From Entomortierella parvispora E1425 (Eukaryota > Fungi > Mortierellomycota): 64,000 nt of DNA. Shown in pieces: positions 1,462 through 15,596 of the stretch. The notes below the pieces were generated by a model, which saw only the letters and a program-made list of their open reading frames with translations, was not told the origin of the DNA and searched no databases. The stretch's first letter is position 1. Every line of letters begins with the position of its first letter. The stretch lies in NCBI GenBank assembly GCA_020891255.1, contig BQFW01000006.1:2294001-2358000 (forward strand), written 5' to 3'. The translations under genes were made by a program, and so were the position numbers.

Positions 1462-3636
<2,175 letters not shown>

Positions 3637-6273
3637 AACAAGAGAATTTGGTCAAGAACTGGAGACGGACGGAGAACGATTCACTTGTACAAAAGTCGAA
3701 AGACACCACCACCTATGGAAATAAATATATTTTTACTGTAATGTCATTTTGGTGGTCATCAGTCTGTCGACATTCGTTTCACTATCATCCCTTGTCCTGG
3801 CTTGCACTTGACCGAAGTGTCTTGATCTTGATCGGATCGTCCAGTTTGTGAAGCATCCTCCTGTGTTTCTGCGCAATTTTTCTCAATCCTTGAGCATGGG
3901 CTTGAAACTATCAAGAATAATCCAAAGTGTATGATCGTGGCTGTAATAAGTGGAAGCTCTTATGAGCTCATTTTGTAATTATCAAAGGGGCATGGACCTT
4001 TTACTTCACAGTGAACATATGGCGCAAGATCATGGGCATCTCAATCCAAACTATTGGTAGCAGCAATGCAGCCGCAGCAGGGGAGCAATCTTGTTGATCT
4101 AGGCGATAGGACCTCCAAGCATCATCATGGAGCAATTGGAGATGTCAGCCTATCAGAGCAGTTATTGTAGAGGAGTGTAGATGAATGAAGCGGACACATC
4201 CTACTGAGGATGTCATGCCGAAAGGATGCTTTCATTTTCATTTTTATTTTTTTATTATTGTTGAAGGCATCTACACCCACACAGGCACACACTCGGTCTC
4301 TCTTCGTCTCTCTGCCTCAAGCAGTCGGGACATGGACTTGGAGTAGAAGAGAGGTGAGGAGGGTGGCCTTGCACTCTCAGATCAGCCATGGCTGTGTGGT
4401 CAAGACCAGGTTGTCGGTGTTGGGGTTGATATATCTTTTTTATTCGAGATTTTTATTCCTTTGATTTGATCTGTCGCGCACAGGCCAGAACGAGGGATGG
4501 GGGGCCATCCTTGCACAGAAGCTCCTTCCTTGCTTGACCTTGGCCACGCATCTCTGGAATCGATGGTGGATGCCAACAGCACCGTCACTCTACGATCTCA
4601 ATCTGACTCCACTCTGCGACCACCTTGCGTTGCATCCAGCTGGACATCCACACATTAAGCAACATCCCCACTCTCTCAATTCACCCCCTCTTTTTCTTTG
4701 CGTTGGCTCTCCATTGACCACAGACACCACCTCTCGACACATCCACCCTCTGCCGTGTTCTTCATCTCTGCCATCTCCACTTAAACCCGGCCTCAGCAGT
4801 GTCCAAGTGCACTCGGAGCATCCGTGTCAAGAGGCTGTCAAAGAACGAGAAGAAAGAGGCGTTGTACCGAAGGCCGTAAGTGAGGATCCTACCTCGGACC
4901 ATTTTCACGTTCTTTCTTTCCGGACCAACAACTCCACCTTGACCAGGACAGTTTGGGCTCCATGGTGACAGATCTCCCCTCCGAGTGCCCATACTCCTCT
5001 TCCACCATCACCCTGCAACAGGCTGAGATGACATTCCCTCATCGTAGCCTTGAATCCCTCCGTCTCTCGCACCCCGACAACACCACGAGTCTTTCGCTTT
5101 AACTCGCGTTTTTCGGATTCTCGTTTATTCGAGTTCCTTTAAAACGACTTGGTGTTTTTTTGTTTTCTCCACTGCTCCCATTCAACGCTGATCTCCTTCG
5201 TCTCATCCTTGATCCCTCACATCCCTCTTTGCCCTTCACCTCGACCGCCACTGCTCATCTCCTCTGGTCCTGGCTCTACCCCACTCCCTCGTTGGTATGT
5301 GCCGGCTGTCCAACCACAACTATCTGTGTCCACAGTCCTGTTCTTGCCTCGCCACTCCCCGTCTCTGCCACCAAATTCTACATCGGGCGACTTCAACTAT
5401 CGTTCCTGCTGCTTGCACTTGTCAATATCCCATGCCAAACCTCTTTTGATCCGTTTGCCCACTGCCAAGCGACTTGGGCACACCTTCCTCCCACTTTCTC
5501 GCCGTTATATAGCCTGCTCATCGATTCATCGCCGGGACAGTGCCGTGTGTCTCCCTGTCGACTTGCTGTGGACATTTCTGCTCTTTCAAATGTCCAATGA
5601 TCCACCCTTCTATCCACGCTACCCTTCTCTCCACCCTCCTTAATGACTTGCAGCAGCAAAGAGTCATCCTCGTACCTGCTGCATACTTTTCTGAGGATTT
5701 GAAGACAAAAAAATATTACTCGAGGTGTGAATGGAGACGATTCGATCTCTTTTTTTCCCCTCATCGATTCTTGAATCAGCAAGATCTCTTCACCTCACTT
5801 TCACCAAGCACCTCCGACCGAGGTCCACACCCTGGTCCCCCATCCTCTCGTGCGCCTGCTGCACTCTTCTATACCGATATCCAGCTTTGGTTCTCTTGGC
5901 AAGTCCAAGTATTGTTGTCTGGGCTGTTACTGACTGACCTCATATTCTTTTCTGTAGACATCTTGCCTACTTTCCCACAGACACCCTCACATCACCTGCG
6001 GCGTAAGAGGCGATACCGAACCACTGATCTCACCAAAGCTTCTTGGACTCTTTGGAACTTGTAAGGTGGATAGTACGCTGAAGACACGGCAAAATCTCGT
6101 CGTCGTACGCGTCCTATTCCAAAAACCATTTCCAGTGCATTTGCCTCCAGTCGTAGAGTGCAACTCCTTGGGCACAATTTTTTTTTGTTCAAGGCCATTA
6201 CCCTCTGAGAAACGTCATCTCGACAAGCTTCTGGGAAGAGGACAGCGTCAACGCCCATTCACTGGAACAACAA

Positions 6274-9200
6274 ATGGCGGATTCTCCAAGCTCATCAACG
6301 TCCCCCACAATCGGGACATCCAAACAGTCCCCACCTGGCAGGTCGCAACCCGGTACATGGTCTGGATCACGGCCAGAGCCACCAACGGTTCCAGAAGAAG
6401 GGGCACCAGAGGCTGCTGCACAGCCGCCGGTGCATACTGTGGCGCCTGCTCGAAGCGATCGAAAAGAGGGTAGATATTAGATGTCTGACATTTTTTTTGG
6501 GGGATATACTCGATTCGACATCGGAACTAATAATCGGTTGCAATTGAACTCATTGTCATCCTCGATGATCTCTGATAGACAATACTGGTGAACAAACAGG
6601 ATCCGACACGAGTTTCAAGATTCGCATACCCAGAGATCTGCCCAATATTCCAGACGCATTTCGGAAACAAAGCTCGGTTCCGACCATATCAAAATTGCAA
6701 TCCATACCAATGGATTCACGTTCATTATCAGCAGGAGCAGAGACCCCCACCAGCACCGCAACTTTCGAAGGGGCTGAGCCAATTAAACGATCACACAGCG
6801 AAATGCTTTCGACAGAGCCAGAGTCAAGGAAAGCGCATTTCCCCATCTTTGGTATGTATAATCCAAGAGATTTCCGGTGTAATTTCGTAATTTCGTACTT
6901 TTTCATTTTTTTTTTCCTGTTCTCAAATGCAGAAAACTGACATTGCCCTCTCTTCGTGATGGCCAATAGACAAGAAACGAAGACTTGCATCCTCGTCACC
7001 AACCATCGTTGAGCCATCCTCGCAGATTAGTCCCTCGACAACGTCGGGGTCACCAACCGCAACAACCACATCCGTTTTTACACACCTATCTGTTGCGCCC
7101 GAGGTTTCCCAAACAGAGGGAACCAATTCGTCCGCGCTGCTTTCGCCAGGGAAAAGGCGCTCACGGAGCCGGACACACTCGGGCTCCAATTCACCAGCAC
7201 CGTCCCATCTTCTGGCCAGCCCCTCATCCTCAGAGACCGCACCACCTACAGACGCCGAGGAAATGATTATCAAAACAGAATCTGCTCCTTCACCGAAACC
7301 ATTTGCCATTCCAGCAGTCGTGGTTCCGATGCGTACGGATCGATCCCCTTCTATAGACATTGAGCTCCTGGATGTAGAAATCACGGATGCAAAGTATCCT
7401 GAGCTGACACCGATGGAGCTCGTTCGAGTTGGCACCATGATTTTGGATACACTGCTGAGCGACCCCATTTGCAGTAACTTTGTGAACAGGGTTCCGCAAT
7501 CGCTGACACTCTATCACGCCGTCATCAAGAACCCCATGGATCTGACAACCATCGAGGCAAAGCTTTGGAAAAGCCTCGATGTTCATCAGACCCTGCCAAG
7601 CGAACCTTCCACACCGTCTTTGACTGCTGCTACCGATCATTTAGACCTGTCAGCAGTGGAAGGGTACAAGGGCCTCCAGGACTTTGAGAACGACCTCCGA
7701 CTGATATTCCAGAACGCTGTTCACTTCAACAGCCCCGGTGACCCTGTTCACAAACACGCTCAAGCATTTAAAATCCTCTATTCTGCCTTGCTGGGCGCCT
7801 GCCAACAAGGGTGAGTCTTTGTCATGGGTCAACCAATGTTATTATCCCGCTTTTGGATCTCTACACACTAGAAACTAATCGATTCAATCTCACTCTACGT
7901 TTCTGCACCAAAGGCGTTTAGACCCAGATTCAACAATACCCCAGGAGGTTTACAGTCCATCGACAATACCTTTGTCCGAACCAGGGTATGCACATGATAT
8001 CCACCAATGATTGCAATGAGCCGTTGAATGGCTATTTTTTAACAAAGTATTTCGTCTTTGCATTTCGACATCTAGGACATTGTATATTTGTCGAGCACAA
8101 ACTCTGCGCGAGATGAGGCAAAAAATGACAGACTTGTCAGTTGAGCTCTATACCAGCTTTCACCAACCGTTGATGGAGGTGACTCAAGAGATTGGGCTGC
8201 TCACTGAAGATAAGCCACGGTTCGTTCGACTCTACATCAGCAAGAATCGCCGTGGCTTATACAACTGTCGAGACGAGTATGGGGCCAAGCTCGCCATTGT
8301 GAGCGACATGTCGACAGGAAAGCCATACACTTCACAAGTCCAGTATGCGGCTGATGGAACGACGATTGTTGGAGGTGGCGAGAAAGTAATACGACTCACG
8401 GCGCGAGTATTAATCGGAAAACCGGTGGGAGAGGGCCACGACCTCTCTACTGTGGGAGACTTGGATTGCCCGAGCACCTGGATCATGGTCGCGTGTGTGA
8501 AGGCCATCGCGATAGACGTAGAGATTCCTGCAAGGTACGAAAAGGGTGGCCTCACCAAAATGAGGAGCGAAGTTGTCTCTCTTGGTCCCGGCTCCAAGAT
8601 GAGGGAAGACCTCATCCATCTTCTCGCAGATGCCATGGGCCTCAAATTGGGGCCAGCCACCCAGGGGGGCTCGACGATCCCCAGTTCGTCTATCGCCCCT
8701 TCTTCAGCGCCATCGTCTGCTCGCCCAAGTATACCAGTCTCGCGACCGTCGAGTCAGAGGCACCAACCTTCATCTGCGATGGCCATGAATGCAGCCCGTG
8801 GCGATGTCTATGAATCCTCAGGTCCGGCCCAGATCAGGTCCTGGACAGAGAGTACATTACCTCCTTCTCGTCCTCCCCAACCGTCCCGCGACTCTAAACG
8901 ACCAGCGCCATCACCTCTAGAGTCTGCACCTCCACCGCAGCGGCCAGCATTGTCGCAGCACAATGATAAACAAGACGCACTCGGAATCCAGGCGCCAAAG
9001 CCTGTACGAGCGCCTGTTGTAGAGTAAGTGAGGCTTTGCCACCGATGCAATGTGGATGTGCAACCAGTTCACCTTGAACTAATTCTTTTTTTTTGTTTGT
9101 TTGTTCGTTTGTTTGTCTCTCAGGCCTTCACCGCCTTTGGCATCCAAAGCAATCTCCATGCCCAAGCCTGTCAACACAACAGCCCCCGAGATAGCAGGTC

Positions 9201-10630
9201 TGACCCGCAGCAGTTCTAGAATCTCAAACCAAGCCGCCTTTGCTATCGCTAATAACAAGGAACCTTTACCAAAGGTGGAGTTCATGGAGCTTGACTCTGA
9301 GGTGATTGTGCCCCTGTCGAGCGGATCCTCAGAGCAGCGGGCATTGACACGACGTGAGCTGCAACTACTTCGAGATCTCAAGGTGGCGGCACACCATCGA
9401 CATATTCCTTACACCCGATGGAGCGATATCGAGCCGACCCTGACGGTCGACTCGGCTTTTGGGCTCTTCAAACGGATATACCATGTTCAAGGCAATGACG
9501 GTTTGGTCGTCCAGAACTTCAAGGAGATGGATGTAGAGTCGTTTGAGCAGCGGGTCCGAGAAGTCGCCTGTCTACTCAAGCTCCGCGGGCTGGAAGGCAT
9601 TGGTCAGATCCAATCGGTGATTGATGACGAAAAGGACCAGCTCGTGGGTCTTTCTATGACAAAGTAAGATGCCGTTCCTGTCTTTGGAATGTGCGCTACA
9701 TGCTTCTTTTGGTTTTCTGTCGAAAGGCTCGTGCTTATTTTTTTTTTTTTTTTTTTTTTTTTGCGCAACTTTAGATACGAATACACGCTCAAGGCCTACG
9801 CGACCAATGCTCGTCGTGCACCCAGTCCACATCAGAAACTGAGTATTGTCCAGGACATGGTGGCAGCCATCAGCAGGATCCATGCCGCTGGATTGGCCCA
9901 TCGCGATTTGAGCGAGGTCAATATCATGATTGATGAGGACCCCGTTAACAAATTGGGGGATGGCACTCCTCGACCGCTTGTGCGTGTGATCGATTTTGGA
10001 AAGTCTGTGTTTGTGGAGGCAGATGAGGTCAAGCGATGGAGTATGCTCGAGACTGTGCCCGAAGAAGAGCTGGCGCTCTTGCCTTTGGTGATTCTACCCC
10101 CCGACCATGGGTACAAGCTCTATAGGTAAGAGCAAACGGATAATTCTAAAAAAAAAAAAAGCGATGACATGGAACTCTCCCTGTGTCGTGCATGCTCTTG
10201 AAGACTCACTTTTTTTTTTCTTCTTTTGTCGTTGCTTAGATCCATTTTGACACTGCCCAGGAGCAAGTCCGATCACACCCCACTCCCCCCAGTGGATCCC
10301 CGCTTGGAAGACGTGTATTCTATGGGAGTTTTGATCTGGCGAACGTTCAGTGGCAAGTCACCCTGGGCAGGCGCGATCGAGGATGACATTCGGGCGATCC
10401 GGTGCCTCGTCTGCAGCGACCATCAGATCAAGTTCCACATTGGTCGTGAGGTCGAGGGACCTCGAAGCCGCGAACTGCTGTTGAAGTGCTTGACCGCGCA
10501 GGCCGAGACTCGATGCACGGCAGAGCAGATCTTGAAATGGCTGGGACAGGCCCATGTATTACGGGATCTTCTCCAAGAGTTTGAGAGTGTAGGCGCGGGA
10601 CGAAAACGGGTCAAGAAGAACCTGGATTAG
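6274..10630 (+). CDS. Bromodomain + unknown beta-rich domain + C-terminal atypical protein kinase-like domain (~1,200 aa, about 8 exons)
   Basis: Each junction keeps frame (approx. exons 6274-6469, 6578-6851, 6969-7810, 7911-7985, 8076-9024, 9124-9663, 9775-10125, 10240-10630). Bromodomain motifs YHAVIKNPMDL and DLRLIFQNAVHFN. Kinase motifs HRDLSEVN, IDFGKS, DVYSMGVLIW. Start codon uncertain. Confidence 0.8.
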
Positions 10631-11029
10631 TGGTTCGTCTCTCTTTCTCTTCTCTTTTTTTTTGGAATTCTTGAGAAAAAAAAAAAAAAAAAAAGAAAAA
10701 AAACTCAATTGTACTGTACAAAAACAAAAAATAATAATAGAAGTAGCAACAGGGGAGTGAGAAAGATCCACCCTGGAAAAACAATGAAGTTTGTATATCA
10801 TGAAAGGCAATGTGGAGAGATGTGGAGACACTAAGAGGCACAATGACGCGCTGAAGACGACGTGTTTTACTGATCTTGTCGGTTGAAGGTAAAAAAAATA
10901 GTGCATGTTCATTATTGTTTGGAAGGTGTATTTGTGGTAGCGTGAGCAGTAGATGGGGATATAAGACGATTGGGATCGTAATGACTGTGGCTATGATACA
11001 ATGAATGGGGAGAAAGGGAGGGGGTTTTT

Positions 11030-12322
11030 TTACAACAGAGTGCACATCAATGCTGTCGAGGAGGCGAGCACCACCAACAGGGCGAGCGTGACGCGGTGGC
11101 GGATCTGAAGACGAACTGCCAACGAAGGCACCGACTGTGTCTTTTCTGCGTCGGAGGGAGTCAACTTGACGTCGCTGCCAAAGCCAGTCTTGGCCCCCCC
11201 GACATTGTTGTTTGCGGCCCTGTCGGGAGTAGGAGGAAGAGGGGCGACGCTGTTGATGTACATCTTGGCCGCGTTGGGTTTCCCACCCGGGTTGGCTTGC
11301 AAGCCCTTGATCCTGAACTGCCGATCTTGCACCAAAAACCCGCTATTGTCCATGGCCGCGGTCGAAGCAGAATTGACCGTGTTGGCGTTATCGAGGGCAT
11401 TGACATGCTTGTTCTTGCCCTTGACCAAAAACTCGAGCAACTCAAACCGCTTCCTGTTCTTTGGGTTGTTTTGACCATTGCCTGCTGCAGCTACGGACGC
11501 ACCACCCGGGTACATGACCGTGGGTAGATCGGTCAAGGTGGCGACCCGGGGGGCATCCGAGGTCTTGAGGACGACGCGAAACTTTTCCGAAAAGTCGAAA
11601 TCCGCATCCAATGCCTTGGGGATCTGCCATGACTTCCACAGGAAGGGTTCGTTCTTCTTGGCCAGATTCTGGGGCACCTCGGTGCCCTCGGGGACCAAGA
11701 CCGCCAAGCGGACCTTGCCAAATTCATCCATCAATTCCAACGAAGCCGATCGAGGCGGTTGAGCGCCTTTGGGGGTCAACATCCAGAAATCAATCTTGTT
11801 CTCTCCGGCCACATAACTGGAACGGTAGTTGAGATAGTAGAAATCCAAGCCTGGGCCTACCGTGGGCAGGAACGCGAGCTTTTGTTTGCCTTCGGCTTGC
11901 GCCTCGATCTGGAGCTGCAATGGCGCGGCCTTGGGGGACATGGAGACATCCATGATCTTGATCTGTTTGTCCGGTGTCTTGTTTCCCTTCTTGGCAGGGG
12001 CTGCTTCACTGCCGAGGGAGAGGATCGACATGGAGGCAAAGGAGAGCAGGATAAGCAAAGTCCAGAGGGAGGGGATCGAGACTCTGAAAAAAGCCGAGTG
12101 GGAACGACGATTGGGTGGATGGGAGAGAAAAGACGAGGCAAGGACGGTCGAGCGTTCCTTGGAAGGGGACAGGGCCGGGCAAAGAAAGTTCACGGCCATG
12201 GCCAAAGTCCTTAAGGCGACTTTTGAAGGTGCCGTGGATTTGAAGGGATCCATAGCCTTTAGAAGCGAGGAGTGCAAAAAGGAATGAGAGATGGGTAGTG
12301 AAGTTGTTGGCATCTCGAGCAT
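11030..12322 (-). CDS. Hypothetical membrane/cell-surface protein (~430 aa, intronless)
   Basis: Long open frame from ATG 12322. Internal hydrophobic signal-like segment (SLWTLLILLSFASMSILSLGSEA), a beta-rich central domain, and a C-terminal hydrophobic tail (VTLALLVVLASSTALMCTLL) resembling a GPI signal or tail anchor. Confidence 0.7.
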   Translation of the reverse strand: MLEMPTTSLPISHSFLHSSLLKAMDPFKSTAPSKVALRTLAMAVNFLCPALSPSKERSTVLASSFLSHPPNRRSHSAFFRVSIPSLWTLLILLSFASMSILSLGSEAAPAKKGNKTPDKQIKIMDVSMSPKAAPLQLQIEAQAEGKQKLAFLPTVGPGLDFYYLNYRSSYVAGENKIDFWMLTPKGAQPPRSASLELMDEFGKVRLAVLVPEGTEVPQNLAKKNEPFLWKSWQIPKALDADFDFSEKFRVVLKTSDAPRVATLTDLPTVMYPGGASVAAAGNGQNNPKNRKRFELLEFLVKGKNKHVNALDNANTVNSASTAAMDNSGFLVQDRQFRIKGLQANPGGKPNAAKMYINSVAPLPPTPDRAANNNVGGAKTGFGSDVKLTPSDAEKTQSVPSLAVRLQIRHRVTLALLVVLASSTALMCTLL

Positions 12323-12850
12323 GGTGCGAAAACAAACGAGTACTGTGGATAGAAGCACCTGATCAGGGACAGACAGTAAAAAAAAAAAAAAAAAAAAAAA
12401 AAGAGCTGAGTAATGATACAAGCGCGTTGAACCAGCAGACAATGGCTGGAAAGAGTCGAGTTGAAAACGGTTGAAGGGTGTGGCTGTTTCTGCTTGTTGT
12501 GTTGTGGTTTGCAACAATGGGGGTGAAAGAATCGAGGGTTGAACAGGAGGTGCCCTTTATATCTCCAGGGATCGAGGATCGCCCTAGGGACACGGCGGCA
12601 AAGGAAGCCAGGTGAGACCCCAACGGACAGGAAAATAATTTTTCGTTTGCTTGCGGGCCGTTGCGCATCATCCTCCCATTCCACATTCCCCGGCGTCCTG
12701 GCTGCTGTCAGCAAAGGTCGCGTCAAGATCATCTTTTTTTTTTTTTTTTCATTTCAGGATGGATGGAGGGAAAGGATTTTACGGGGATAAATTTTTATCC
12801 TCATGATTTTATTCTCGATTTCATAGTATGAAAAACATGTGGAGCCCAAC

Positions 12851-15268
12851 TCACGCGCGTTTGCGATATTGCAATCCATTGTTGAAGGAATACAAGACCC
12901 TTGTGTCTTCTCCCTCAATGTGCACCACCCGAATCCTCGGGTCATCCCCTTCTTCCACTTCCTCCTCGACGATTCGAATGTCACCAAGACCCGTATCTCC
13001 AGGCATCACTTGGAGAAGTCCGCCCAACTTCAATGTGCGTTCACGAACTTCCAACTTTGATATCGCCCTCTTGAGCGACATCAGCTCATCGGTCGCCTGC
13101 ATCCAGCCTCTAAACGTGAATCCAATGCAAGACTCTTCGTTGATCTCTGTCAAATTTGGCATCACTTTTCCAAACATGTACAGCAGTGCTGCATCCGAGA
13201 TGGACCACTGCCCAAGAAGGTGAAAAGCAGACAACTTGGGAGCCAGGATCGCGTTCCCTGCGGCATCTTGAAAGTCGTCCTCTTTCAAGATCCTGAGGTG
13301 ACCACCTCGACCTTGCAGAGATTCCATCGTAATGGTGCTCAAAACCAGCAGCTCCAAGTTCGGACACCCTTGCATCATCCTAAATTGGAACCGCCACGCA
13401 AACTCGGACGTCAACTGGATTCTTGTCAACTGTGGCAGATGCCAATCCCACTTCCAAGTAGGACGTGTAAACATTCCTGTGAGAGAAGGCGGCAGCCATG
13501 GATTTTCATGCTCATTTGCTGCTGATAATATCTGTTCGAATTGGTGCATCTCTGTGGAGGGTGGAATGAATGTCCTGCTCGGGTTCCAACTGTACAACCC
13601 CAACGTCAATTCCTCGAGTTTTGTGCAGTGCCTCAAGGTCTCTGGATGGAATGAAAGTGCTGCAGAACCAATCAGCCTCAATGTCGTCAACTTGGGTAAA
13701 TGAGCAGGCGACCAAGGAATGATATGGGAGCATCTGTAGTGATTGAGTTCGTCCTGGAGGTCAAGCGTCTCGAGATCGGGGCTACGCAAGAGGAAATCGG
13801 GTTCGACCTGCATTGTTCGGACCATGCACGAGGCCCTCAGGTGTTGAAGCCGAGGCAGGTCCCATCCGCCACCCACGACAACTGGGAGAATAGGAGCCAC
13901 TTGGGCATCTCTCCGAAGACATCGGACAACAAGGGATTTCAATGTGCTTGAAAACGCAAACACCACATCATCCATTTCGTCCGTCATCTCTGCAATAGGT
14001 AGTCGCAATCGAACCACCTTGACTGGCAGGGCGGGTGGAAATGGAGTTGAAGGGGCTGAACTACTGGAGAGTTCAGTTGAAGAAGCGGTGGCAGCGAGAG
14101 AGACGTCCTGAGACGCTTGGCGAAGGCGCTTTTCAGCATCCTTTCTTGCCCAGAAGAGTGGTCGCGATCCAGGAGATGAGATGTCAAGGAGCACCAAGTT
14201 GTGGCTAGCACGGAAGATCTCCAGGCCCCCAGCACCCTGCGAAGCCAAAAAGTCCAACCAGGGGGCTTCGTGCTGGGGCACAACGATTTTCTCCAGCCGA
14301 CTAAAATCCAGATGGCCAATATTCTGGATAAAGTCGGGCCAGTTGTGCTTGTTGATCACCTTGGGCCGATAAGGAGGAAGACAGGCGCGGATCAGCTTCA
14401 TGTAGTGAGGCGGACACGACTGCTCCATGCCCGGCCAGGTGCCGTCTTGGGGGCACTCTACACTCGTCAATCCACGCTGGAACAGCTGCGTGTGTTTCTT
14501 CACAAAGCGAACCATCTGCGACATGGCCTCGTCTTTGGCCAGTCGCATGGACTGGAACAGACTCGGGTCTTGTTCTTGAAGCATGCTTACCAAGTATTGA
14601 GGACGATCATGTTTCTCGTCCAGGATGAACGTGAGTGAGCGAAGGCTCTTGAGTTGGTCCGCCACATCGATGTATCGCTGGAGACCAGAGACTGGGATGG
14701 AGAGACTTTTGACGTTCTGTAGAATCGGACGGCAAAGGGCCCAAAAGAGGGCGACTCGCACATCTACTTGAAAGTACCGTCGAGGAACAACGTCCTTGGG
14801 CATGTACGGATTGATTTCCAAATCCAATTCTCTGGCCTGATAAATGGATTCAAGGCGGCTCTCGTTCACAAAGCCCTGGATCGAAGGTGACGAGTACTCG
14901 AAGGATGACTCCAAAGGCAAGCCTGAGAGATCCAAGTACTGCACATAGGCAAGGTAGTCAATGCCCGAGGGTGCCTTTTGATAATCTCCGGCGGAATACA
15001 GGTTGAAGACAGCTGAAAGCAATGTTGACCAATGCTCTGAGGAGTGAGATCTGAGGAGAGTAAATATCAGCTTGTGCAGGGCCGGATCATACTGGTTCTG
15101 GTCCTTCTTGGTGGGAATAAACCATTGGAAAGGATTGGTATAGAGGAAGGGCAGGCTCACGGCACAGAGTCGCCTGTTTGTCGTCAACAGCGAGAACAGG
15201 TCTGCCTTGGTCGACAGCTCCCTGATGATGAGCTGCAGACACTCGATGGGCAGGTCATCGAAAGCCAT
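12851..15268 (-). CDS. F-box-like / degenerate LRR protein (~805 aa, intronless)
   Basis: N-terminal LPIECLQLIIRELS...LFSLLTTNRRLCAVSLPFLY F-box-like motif, followed by repeated LxxLxL segments (LPRLQHLRA, LPKLTTLRL, CPNLELLVL, MPNLTEINE). Confidence 0.8.
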   Translation of the reverse strand: MAFDDLPIECLQLIIRELSTKADLFSLLTTNRRLCAVSLPFLYTNPFQWFIPTKKDQNQYDPALHKLIFTLLRSHSSEHWSTLLSAVFNLYSAGDYQKAPSGIDYLAYVQYLDLSGLPLESSFEYSSPSIQGFVNESRLESIYQARELDLEINPYMPKDVVPRRYFQVDVRVALFWALCRPILQNVKSLSIPVSGLQRYIDVADQLKSLRSLTFILDEKHDRPQYLVSMLQEQDPSLFQSMRLAKDEAMSQMVRFVKKHTQLFQRGLTSVECPQDGTWPGMEQSCPPHYMKLIRACLPPYRPKVINKHNWPDFIQNIGHLDFSRLEKIVVPQHEAPWLDFLASQGAGGLEIFRASHNLVLLDISSPGSRPLFWARKDAEKRLRQASQDVSLAATASSTELSSSSAPSTPFPPALPVKVVRLRLPIAEMTDEMDDVVFAFSSTLKSLVVRCLRRDAQVAPILPVVVGGGWDLPRLQHLRASCMVRTMQVEPDFLLRSPDLETLDLQDELNHYRCSHIIPWSPAHLPKLTTLRLIGSAALSFHPETLRHCTKLEELTLGLYSWNPSRTFIPPSTEMHQFEQILSAANEHENPWLPPSLTGMFTRPTWKWDWHLPQLTRIQLTSEFAWRFQFRMMQGCPNLELLVLSTITMESLQGRGGHLRILKEDDFQDAAGNAILAPKLSAFHLLGQWSISDAALLYMFGKVMPNLTEINEESCIGFTFRGWMQATDELMSLKRAISKLEVRERTLKLGGLLQVMPGDTGLGDIRIVEEEVEEGDDPRIRVVHIEGEDTRVLYSFNNGLQYRKRA

Positions 15269-15596
15269 GGCCGGTTGATGGGGAGGAGGAATGTGCGTTG
15301 CAATGGAGCTGATGGGCAACAGAGGAGAGAGAAGAGAAAGAACGAGAAGCACAGTCCGGGTGAACAGACGCTTGGCAATACGCTCTAATTTATCGATCCC
15401 TCGGTCAGATCTCTGTCATTAAATACATTAAACGATGCCACGAGGGACGTCAAGGGTCGAGAGGTCCAGTTCAAGGCGATTTGCCACCAAACGGATCAGG
15501 ATGTTTGTCTGTCTGTCTATCTGTCCGCCAATGCTGCCGAAGGGTCATTCTCGTTCTTTTTTTTTTATTTGTTCTTTTGTATCCCAGATATCGCAA

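Follow-up and report, generated by a model that had tools for sequence, protein, structure and literature searches.

A predicted one-gene bromodomain and kinase-fold protein of Entomortierella parvispora belongs to an uncharacterised family of early-diverging fungi

We examined a 64,000-nucleotide stretch of DNA from Entomortierella parvispora E1425 (Mortierellomycota; assembly GCA_020891255.1, contig BQFW01000006.1, positions 2,294,001 to 2,358,000), hereafter the window, in which positions 6274-10630 of the forward strand hold one gene for a protein with a bromodomain, a middle domain and a kinase-fold domain. The protein belongs to an uncharacterised family that is built from a disordered N-terminus carrying a conserved short motif, one bromodomain, an α/β middle domain, a serine/proline-rich (S/P-rich) linker and a kinase of the eukaryotic protein kinase (ePK) fold. 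The window sequence from 6100 to 10800 was read, every exon piece was translated in frame, and the boundaries and phases were checked by script. The gene was found to comprise 8 exons and 3612 nt, that is, 1203 codons followed by TAG, for a product of approximately 1203 aa. Each of its 7 introns measures 90-118 nt and runs from GT to AG, and the phases were consistent at all junctions (Table 1). The first-pass annotation of this DNA had proposed that six pieces splice into one frame. The single frame was borne out, while the number of pieces was not, as 8 exons were found, including a 72-nt mini-exon whose peptide aligns with contiguous homologue sequence (65% identity to the homologue P0004). 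The join that it had considered decisive, given as 9025 to 9123, was correct to within one base, with the donor GTAAGT starting at 9024 and the acceptor AG at 9122-9123. All exon junctions except that of exons 1 and 2 were found to correspond to uninterrupted homologue sequence; the donor of exon 1, GTAGAT, is weak. It was also noted that runs of poly-T and poly-A (up to approximately 23 nt) occur in the introns of the kinase region (9740-9762, 10150-10162 and 10210-10222) and in the 3' flank (10660-10700), where they could trouble assemblers and gene callers.

Table 1. Features of the bromodomain, middle-domain and kinase gene in the window, with the basis of each assignment.
Feature	Position	Strand	Basis
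Whole coding region of the bromodomain / middle-domain / kinase gene	6274-10630	+	GT..AG introns, phases fit
Exon 1: putative start codon followed by the disordered, S/P-rich N-terminus; the model is least certain here	6274-6469	+	Translation
Exon 2: disordered; carries the FKIRIPRDLPNIPDAFR motif (6614-6664) and the KRxHSEML motif	6579-6851	+	Paralogue match
Exon 3: KKRR basic patch, serine/threonine-rich spacer, bromodomain	6970-7810	+	Translation, Pfam
Bromodomain; pocket Tyr codon 7512-7514, pocket Asn codon 7728-7730	7410-7793	+	Pfam PF00439
Low-complexity insert in the loop between helices A and B (AB loop), about 32 aa	7569-7664	+	Pfam match split between profile positions 48 and 51
Exon 4: 72-nt mini-exon, conserved connector peptide from bromodomain to middle domain	7914-7985	+	Homologue alignment
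Exon 5: starts with the middle domain	8076-9023	+	Translation
Family-specific middle domain, about 188 aa, α/β fold weakly like PUA-like domains; motif R-x-Y-I-x-K-N-R	8076-8640	+	
S/P-rich disordered linker, interrupted by intron 9024-9123	8641-9340	+	Translation; the paralogue is intronless here and reads through
Exon 6	9124-9663	+	Translation
Protein-kinase-fold domain, exons 6-8, with introns 9664-9774 and 10126-10239	9341-10597	+	Pfam, alignments, paralogue model
Kinase key codons: glycine-loop Lys; β3 Gln; αC Glu	9470-9472; 9512-9514; 9560-9562	+	Alignment
Kinase key codons: HRDLSEVN; DFG	9899-9922; 9992-10000	+	Alignment
Exon 7: Pkinase match	9775-10125	+	Pfam
Exon 8: Pkinase match, ends in TAG	10240-10630	+	Pfam
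Basic C-terminal tail (GRKRVKKNLD) and stop codon; tail kept in all Mortierellaceae members	10598-10630	+	Alignment

We found that four independent lines of sequence evidence place the bromodomain, the middle domain and the kinase in one predicted gene. The window gene was searched as single exons, and whole-protein searches were run with full-length database homologues. A paralogue on contig C1 of the same genome (G000:C1, locus L003; EMPS_00608, P0046) encodes its middle domain, its linker and the N-lobe of its kinase within a continuous open reading frame (ORF) of 461 aa and its kinase C-lobe within another of 274 aa, so that the junction between middle domain and kinase is crossed without an intron. 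Among homologues, the kinase exon joints LSMTK/Y and KLYR/S (the slash marking the joint) are contiguous. The Bromodomain, middle-domain and Pkinase regions were encountered together in 10 of the 22 cluster representatives (50% identity) retrieved in total by an exhaustive middle-domain search, and precomputed PF00439 and PF00069 matches fall on the same protein in well over 100 database entries. Transcript evidence came from the Logan contig L010 (SRR6256839), in which all three domains lie in a single unbroken ORF of 1210 aa. This contig aligns to the genome of Mortierella sp. GBAus27b as five blocks of 100% identity with four GT..AG gaps between them, and it is therefore a spliced mRNA; two of the GBAus27b introns lie at exactly the same codons and in the same phase as the last two introns of the window gene.

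It was noted that the GBAus27b ortholog (L015, 3001-7255; GCA_025330735.1, JALLLQ010000006.1) is split in GenBank into KAI8358705.1 (1054 aa) and KAI8358706.1 (219 aa). A reading in which two adjacent genes, one for a bromodomain protein and one for a kinase, only seem to splice into one frame can draw on this split, and also on a look-up of sequencing runs that listed no RNA run for the genome of the window. However, because the 100%-identical spliced mRNA spans the whole of the GBAus27b locus, the split annotation is an error, located at the LSMTK/Y intron. Separate bromodomain and kinase transcripts, which the first-pass annotation had held out as the case against a fusion, are thereby contradicted in GBAus27b. 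With the uninterrupted paralogue, an architecture kept in more than 100 models over three subphyla and exon phases that all fit, we consider the two-gene reading hardly credible.

The bromodomain of exon 3 matched PF00439 at 62.1 bits (cut-off 21.7; E = 4.8e-17), compared to 59.8 bits for that of the paralogue. Both acetyl-lysine pocket residues claimed at the outset are present; every Mortierellaceae member keeps the Tyr (LYHAVIKNPMDL, YHAVIKNPMDL) and the Asn (HFN), and degenerate forms occur in Basidiobolus only. The sequence matches of the domain in the PDB included PBRM1, TRIM24/33, BRD4, BRD2 and Bdf1. An insert of approximately 33 aa between helices A and B had likewise been described, and it was recovered at approximately 32 aa from the split Pfam match; its length varies within the family, with approximately 8 aa in Actinomortierella and approximately 20 aa in the paralogue. 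In the disordered N-terminus, the FKIRIPRDLPNIPDAFR motif was found to be nearly invariant across Mortierellaceae and to be followed by the KRxHSEML motif. The FKIRIPRDLPNIPDAFR motif may act as a docking or localisation signal.

Fungal bromodomain proteins of the BET/Bdf1 type share with the window protein a bromodomain in which the pocket Tyr and Asn are conserved. They differ in having tandem bromodomains and an ET domain, whereas the window protein has a single bromodomain with a 32-aa AB-loop insert, followed by the middle domain and the kinase; no ET, PHD or WAC domain was detected by Pfam in the window gene or its family. TAF1, BRD4/Fsh and BAZ1B/WSTF are bromodomain proteins of metazoans for which atypical kinase activity has been reported, and they resemble the proposed protein in that a single polypeptide both reads acetyl-lysine and phosphorylates proteins of chromatin or transcription. 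Their kinase activities are located in non-ePK regions, namely the N-terminal and C-terminal kinase regions (NTK and CTK) of TAF1, the N-terminal region of BRD4 and the WAC domain of BAZ1B, unlike the window protein, which pairs its single bromodomain with a true ePK-fold kinase domain.

Between the bromodomain and the kinase, a globular domain of approximately 190 aa had been reported as unassignable, and this assessment was upheld: the domain begins exactly at 8076, and it was without a Pfam or PDB profile match whether the window copy, 46 Mortierellaceae members or 36 diverse members were used as the query. The phmmer search against the PDB also returned nothing, and Pfam had no match to either exon 5 or exon 6. 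A structural model computed from the 46-sequence alignment took the form of an α/β unit (predicted local distance difference test, pLDDT, 85; predicted template modelling score, pTM, 0.80), for which Foldseek gave no match at E <= 1e-3 and the ESM Atlas gave template modelling (TM) scores that were all below 0.5. Across all lineages, only Y3, R51, N57, R58, L61 and P116 are invariant or nearly so; of these, R51 and R58 are strictly invariant and lie within the basic motif R-x-Y-I-x-K-N-R. The middle domain appears to constitute a new domain family that is possibly PUA-like. Members of the PUA-like superfamily (YTH, EVE, ASCH, SRA, Lon N-terminal and the Lon-like domain of CRBN) have no detectable sequence or profile similarity to it, and the fold scores fall in a range that the tool regards as possibly non-specific. 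DUF3626, DUF3841 and OspC were considered as relatives on language-model scores of 0.90-0.92; their recognition was below the reliability mark and otherwise unsupported, and they were dropped.

An intriguing reading of the middle domain is that of a divergent PUA-like reader (YTH/EVE-type) of a modified base, for example N6-methyladenine (6mA) in DNA, in which case the protein would integrate acetylation and 6mA. This modification dominates in exactly these early-diverging fungi, where it sits with H3K4me3 and H3K27ac nucleosomes and marks active promoters, and according to recent papers there is no known reader for it (PMC13297926; PMC12695648). The middle domain is mildly basic. No evident aromatic cage for a modified base was found among its conserved residues, and we regard a base-reading function as quite improbable. 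If true, the protein would be a two-mark reader, of histone acetyl-lysine and 6mA, wired to a kinase in the style of the WNK family discussed below, and it would be the first candidate reader of 6mA in fungi.

The kinase region was matched by the Pkinase model of Pfam at 32.5 bits in exon 7 and 26.4 bits in exon 8, while the N-lobe went undetected by sequence search and by hhalign against a canonical kinase of the same genome. We found that the fold was well recovered through the paralogue, whose kinase (P0046, residues 851-1204) is 72-82% identical to the kinase exons of the window. Its AlphaFold2 model reached a pLDDT of 90 and a pTM of 0.90, and Foldseek aligned this model to many ePKs with probability 1.0 over approximately 340 columns. 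The kinase fold of the first-pass annotation is therefore an ePK fold, as proposed. The canonical active site did not hold up, given a Gln in β3, a glycine loop of the form AxGxFK and a catalytic loop reading HRDLSEVN.

These features were quantified in a residue census over 135 family sequences, alongside an alignment of 41 sequences. The glycine loop follows A-x-G-x-F-K, in which G41, F43 and K44 are invariant in the family (G41 and K44 in 135/135), and it keeps only the middle glycine of GxGxxG. Strand β3 reads V56-x-Q58 in all 135 census sequences, with Gln in place of the catalytic Lys, and the αC Glu (E74) is equally invariant (135/135). The HRD motif, the catalytic-loop N157 and the DFG motif are essentially invariant in the family, and all are present in the window gene; the Lys of HRDLKxxN is replaced by Ser in 127 of 128 sequences. 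The domain also has a degenerate APE motif and, ahead of αF, an insert of 23 aa. In the paralogue model, K44 opens strand β2, right behind the G-x-F turn, with Q58 inside β3 and K61 outside it. The β3 position was placed only by this fold model and by one weak hidden Markov model (HMM) alignment with the best fold match, a CMGC kinase, in which the β3 Lys of the VVK sequence of that kinase falls on the Gln. The lysine that immediately follows β3, K61, was weighed as a catalytic candidate but discarded, since this position is Arg or Gln in 53/135 sequences and lies outside the strand. Weak Pfam matches to RIO1 and Kdo were also recorded in the kinase region, and these arise because of the HRDLSEVN loop.

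The lysine arrangement finds a counterpart in the WNK kinases, as the catalytic Lys of WNK1, Lys233, lies in the glycine-rich loop and not in β3 (PMC5346417). The two groups share the ePK fold, the missing β3 Lys, an invariant Lys at the position of the third glycine, and a retained HRD and αC Glu. They differ in that WNKs have a chloride-sensing DLG and no bromodomain or such middle domain, whereas the present family has DFG, a β3 Gln and the HRDLSEVN loop. No WNK was found among the top 60 PDB profile matches or the top 50 Foldseek matches of the kinase. Because WNKs are not among the best matches, and because the motif is DFG and not DLG, we take this likeness as a mechanistic parallel and not as family membership, and it is probably convergent. 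Phycomyces has been reported to possess three WNK-like sequences (PMC10301571).

The best sequence and fold matches of the kinase were spread over RIPK1, ULK1, TTK, CMGC, DAPK, EGFR, CK2 and RET. Of these, RIPK1 scored best when the kinase profile was searched against PDB sequences (E = 7.6e-11), with coverage confined to the region from αC to the catalytic loop and to αF. In the family, Pfam detected Bromodomain and Pkinase only and neither the death domain nor the RHIM of RIPK1, and the fold search showed no preference for RIPK1. The name RIPK1, which is the automatic label that databases most often attach to family members, is an annotation artefact.

We sought to weigh these active-site features against the possibility that the kinase-fold domain performs no protein phosphorylation and serves as a nucleotide-dependent switch or docking platform, with targeting supplied by the bromodomain and the middle domain. 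The universal β3 Gln, the single retained glycine and the near-universal Ser of the catalytic loop all speak for such a scaffold, as do the RIO1 and Kdo matches drawn by that loop, the degenerate APE motif with the insert ahead of αF, and the HRN and DYG motifs of one Basidiobolus paralogue. However, the catalytic Asp and Asn, the DFG Asp, the αC Glu and the glycine-loop Lys are invariant across the fungal subphyla, which is the pattern expected of an active enzyme, and these subphyla are deeply diverged. Moreover, WNK kinases catalyse with this exact lysine relocation (PMC5346417). A scaffold without kinase activity thus seems unlikely to us.

The distribution of the family was then examined. 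Members were encountered in essentially every Mortierellaceae genus, usually as two per species. A homologue search from a Mucorales member retrieved many Mucorales genera, Umbelopsis and the Glomeromycotina genus Ambispora, all with Bromodomain and Pkinase on one protein. In Basidiobolus ranarum, two relatives were found (KAK9727673.1, P0020; and P0100) that carry the middle domain and the kinase together with a degenerate bromodomain-like region below Pfam detection; a search with P0020 as the query retrieved only its own paralogue. It was noted that in one of the Basidiobolus paralogues HRN and DYG replace HRD and DFG, which suggests, at the level of sequence motifs, a decay towards a pseudokinase outside Mucoromycota. 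By iterated profile searches, the middle domain was found in all these lineages and, within the retrieved set, always between bromodomain and kinase. Among everything retrieved, the architecture was not found outside early-diverging fungi. The claim of a lineage-restricted protein is therefore correct as to restriction, but the lineage spans the whole of Mucoromycota in the broad sense, along with the degenerate form in Basidiobolus. As judged from these sequences, the family is conserved in Mortierellomycotina, where it forms two old paralogue clades, in Mucoromycotina including Umbelopsis, and in Glomeromycotina; given this breadth, it is to be read as an old family and not as a local novelty.

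A quick maximum-likelihood tree of the middle domain, which is provisional, separated two Mortierellaceae clades, one with 33 rows (support 97) and one with 34 (support 82). The window copy belongs to one of them, on a long branch and beside a 91%-identical fragment, and the C1 paralogue to the other. Automatic names assigned to family members in the databases included "hypothetical protein", "Receptor-interacting serine/threonine-protein kinase 1", "SIK kinase 3" and "Histone acetyltransferase kat2b".

Immediately downstream of the window gene, on the reverse strand (11030-12517), lies a gene for a protein of approximately 495 aa that is Ser/Ala-rich with hydrophobic ends and has no Pfam match. 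It has a paralogue at the same position beside the C1 bromodomain-kinase paralogue (L003, 6907-8301, reverse strand). Because these neighbouring minus-strand genes are paralogous as well, the duplication took in a block of two genes or more. Further along, an 833-aa ORF (12851-15352, reverse strand) showed weak F-box-like and leucine-rich-repeat (LRR) Pfam matches, all below the gathering cut-offs, and probably encodes an F-box/LRR protein. Upstream, positions 2788-3636 on the forward strand hold the signal-peptide-binding (M) domain and the end of the GTPase domain of SRP54, and represent an exon of an SRP54 gene.

The explanation that best accounts for these observations is a one-gene bromodomain-kinase protein that would couple an acetylation mark to local phosphorylation, and we give it a probability of roughly 0.6. 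In the proposed mechanism, the bromodomain would tether the protein to acetylated lysines, most plausibly those of histone tails at active chromatin, and the middle domain would contribute a second binding specificity. The kinase would hold ATP through its glycine-loop Lys and would then phosphorylate nearby chromatin or transcription proteins, the net effect being that the acetylation mark is coupled to phosphorylation in its vicinity. Several points weigh against this explanation. Three active-site motifs are off-consensus, since the kinase lacks the β3 Lys, the Lys of HRDLKxxN and all but one of the three glycines of the glycine loop, and catalysis is therefore not assured. The HRDLSEVN loop resembles that of RIO-type ATPase/kinases, which leaves some weight on a pseudokinase or ATPase reading. 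The long branch of the window copy indicates that the function of this copy may have moved away from that of most family members. As to the gene model, BLAST gave no match and hence no homology support for exon 1 and its start codon, and the splice joins of the window gene rest on homology and on the mRNA of a related species. Nuclear localisation is suggested by basic patches only. The bromodomain-kinase protein outlined here is our preferred reading with these points taken into account.

Much is understood of bromodomains and of protein kinases taken singly; a studied protein in which a bromodomain is fused to a genuine ePK-fold kinase is not known to us, and no paper describing this architecture was found in the full-text literature searched. 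Within that literature, the first-pass annotation was right that the protein lacks a characterised counterpart. The database names are all automatic; entries at present carry the wrong labels RIPK1, SIK3 or KAT2B, and in at least one annotated genome the gene appears as two models. Two features offer concrete handles on the family, namely a second, independent example of a relocated catalytic lysine of the WNK type and a confidently modelled new domain. The fungal branch concerned includes opportunistic pathogens (Mucorales), the oil-producing Mortierella and arbuscular mycorrhizal fungi. That the family is so strongly conserved across this major branch implies that it has a genuine function, probably in chromatin signalling, which is not visible in the model yeasts.

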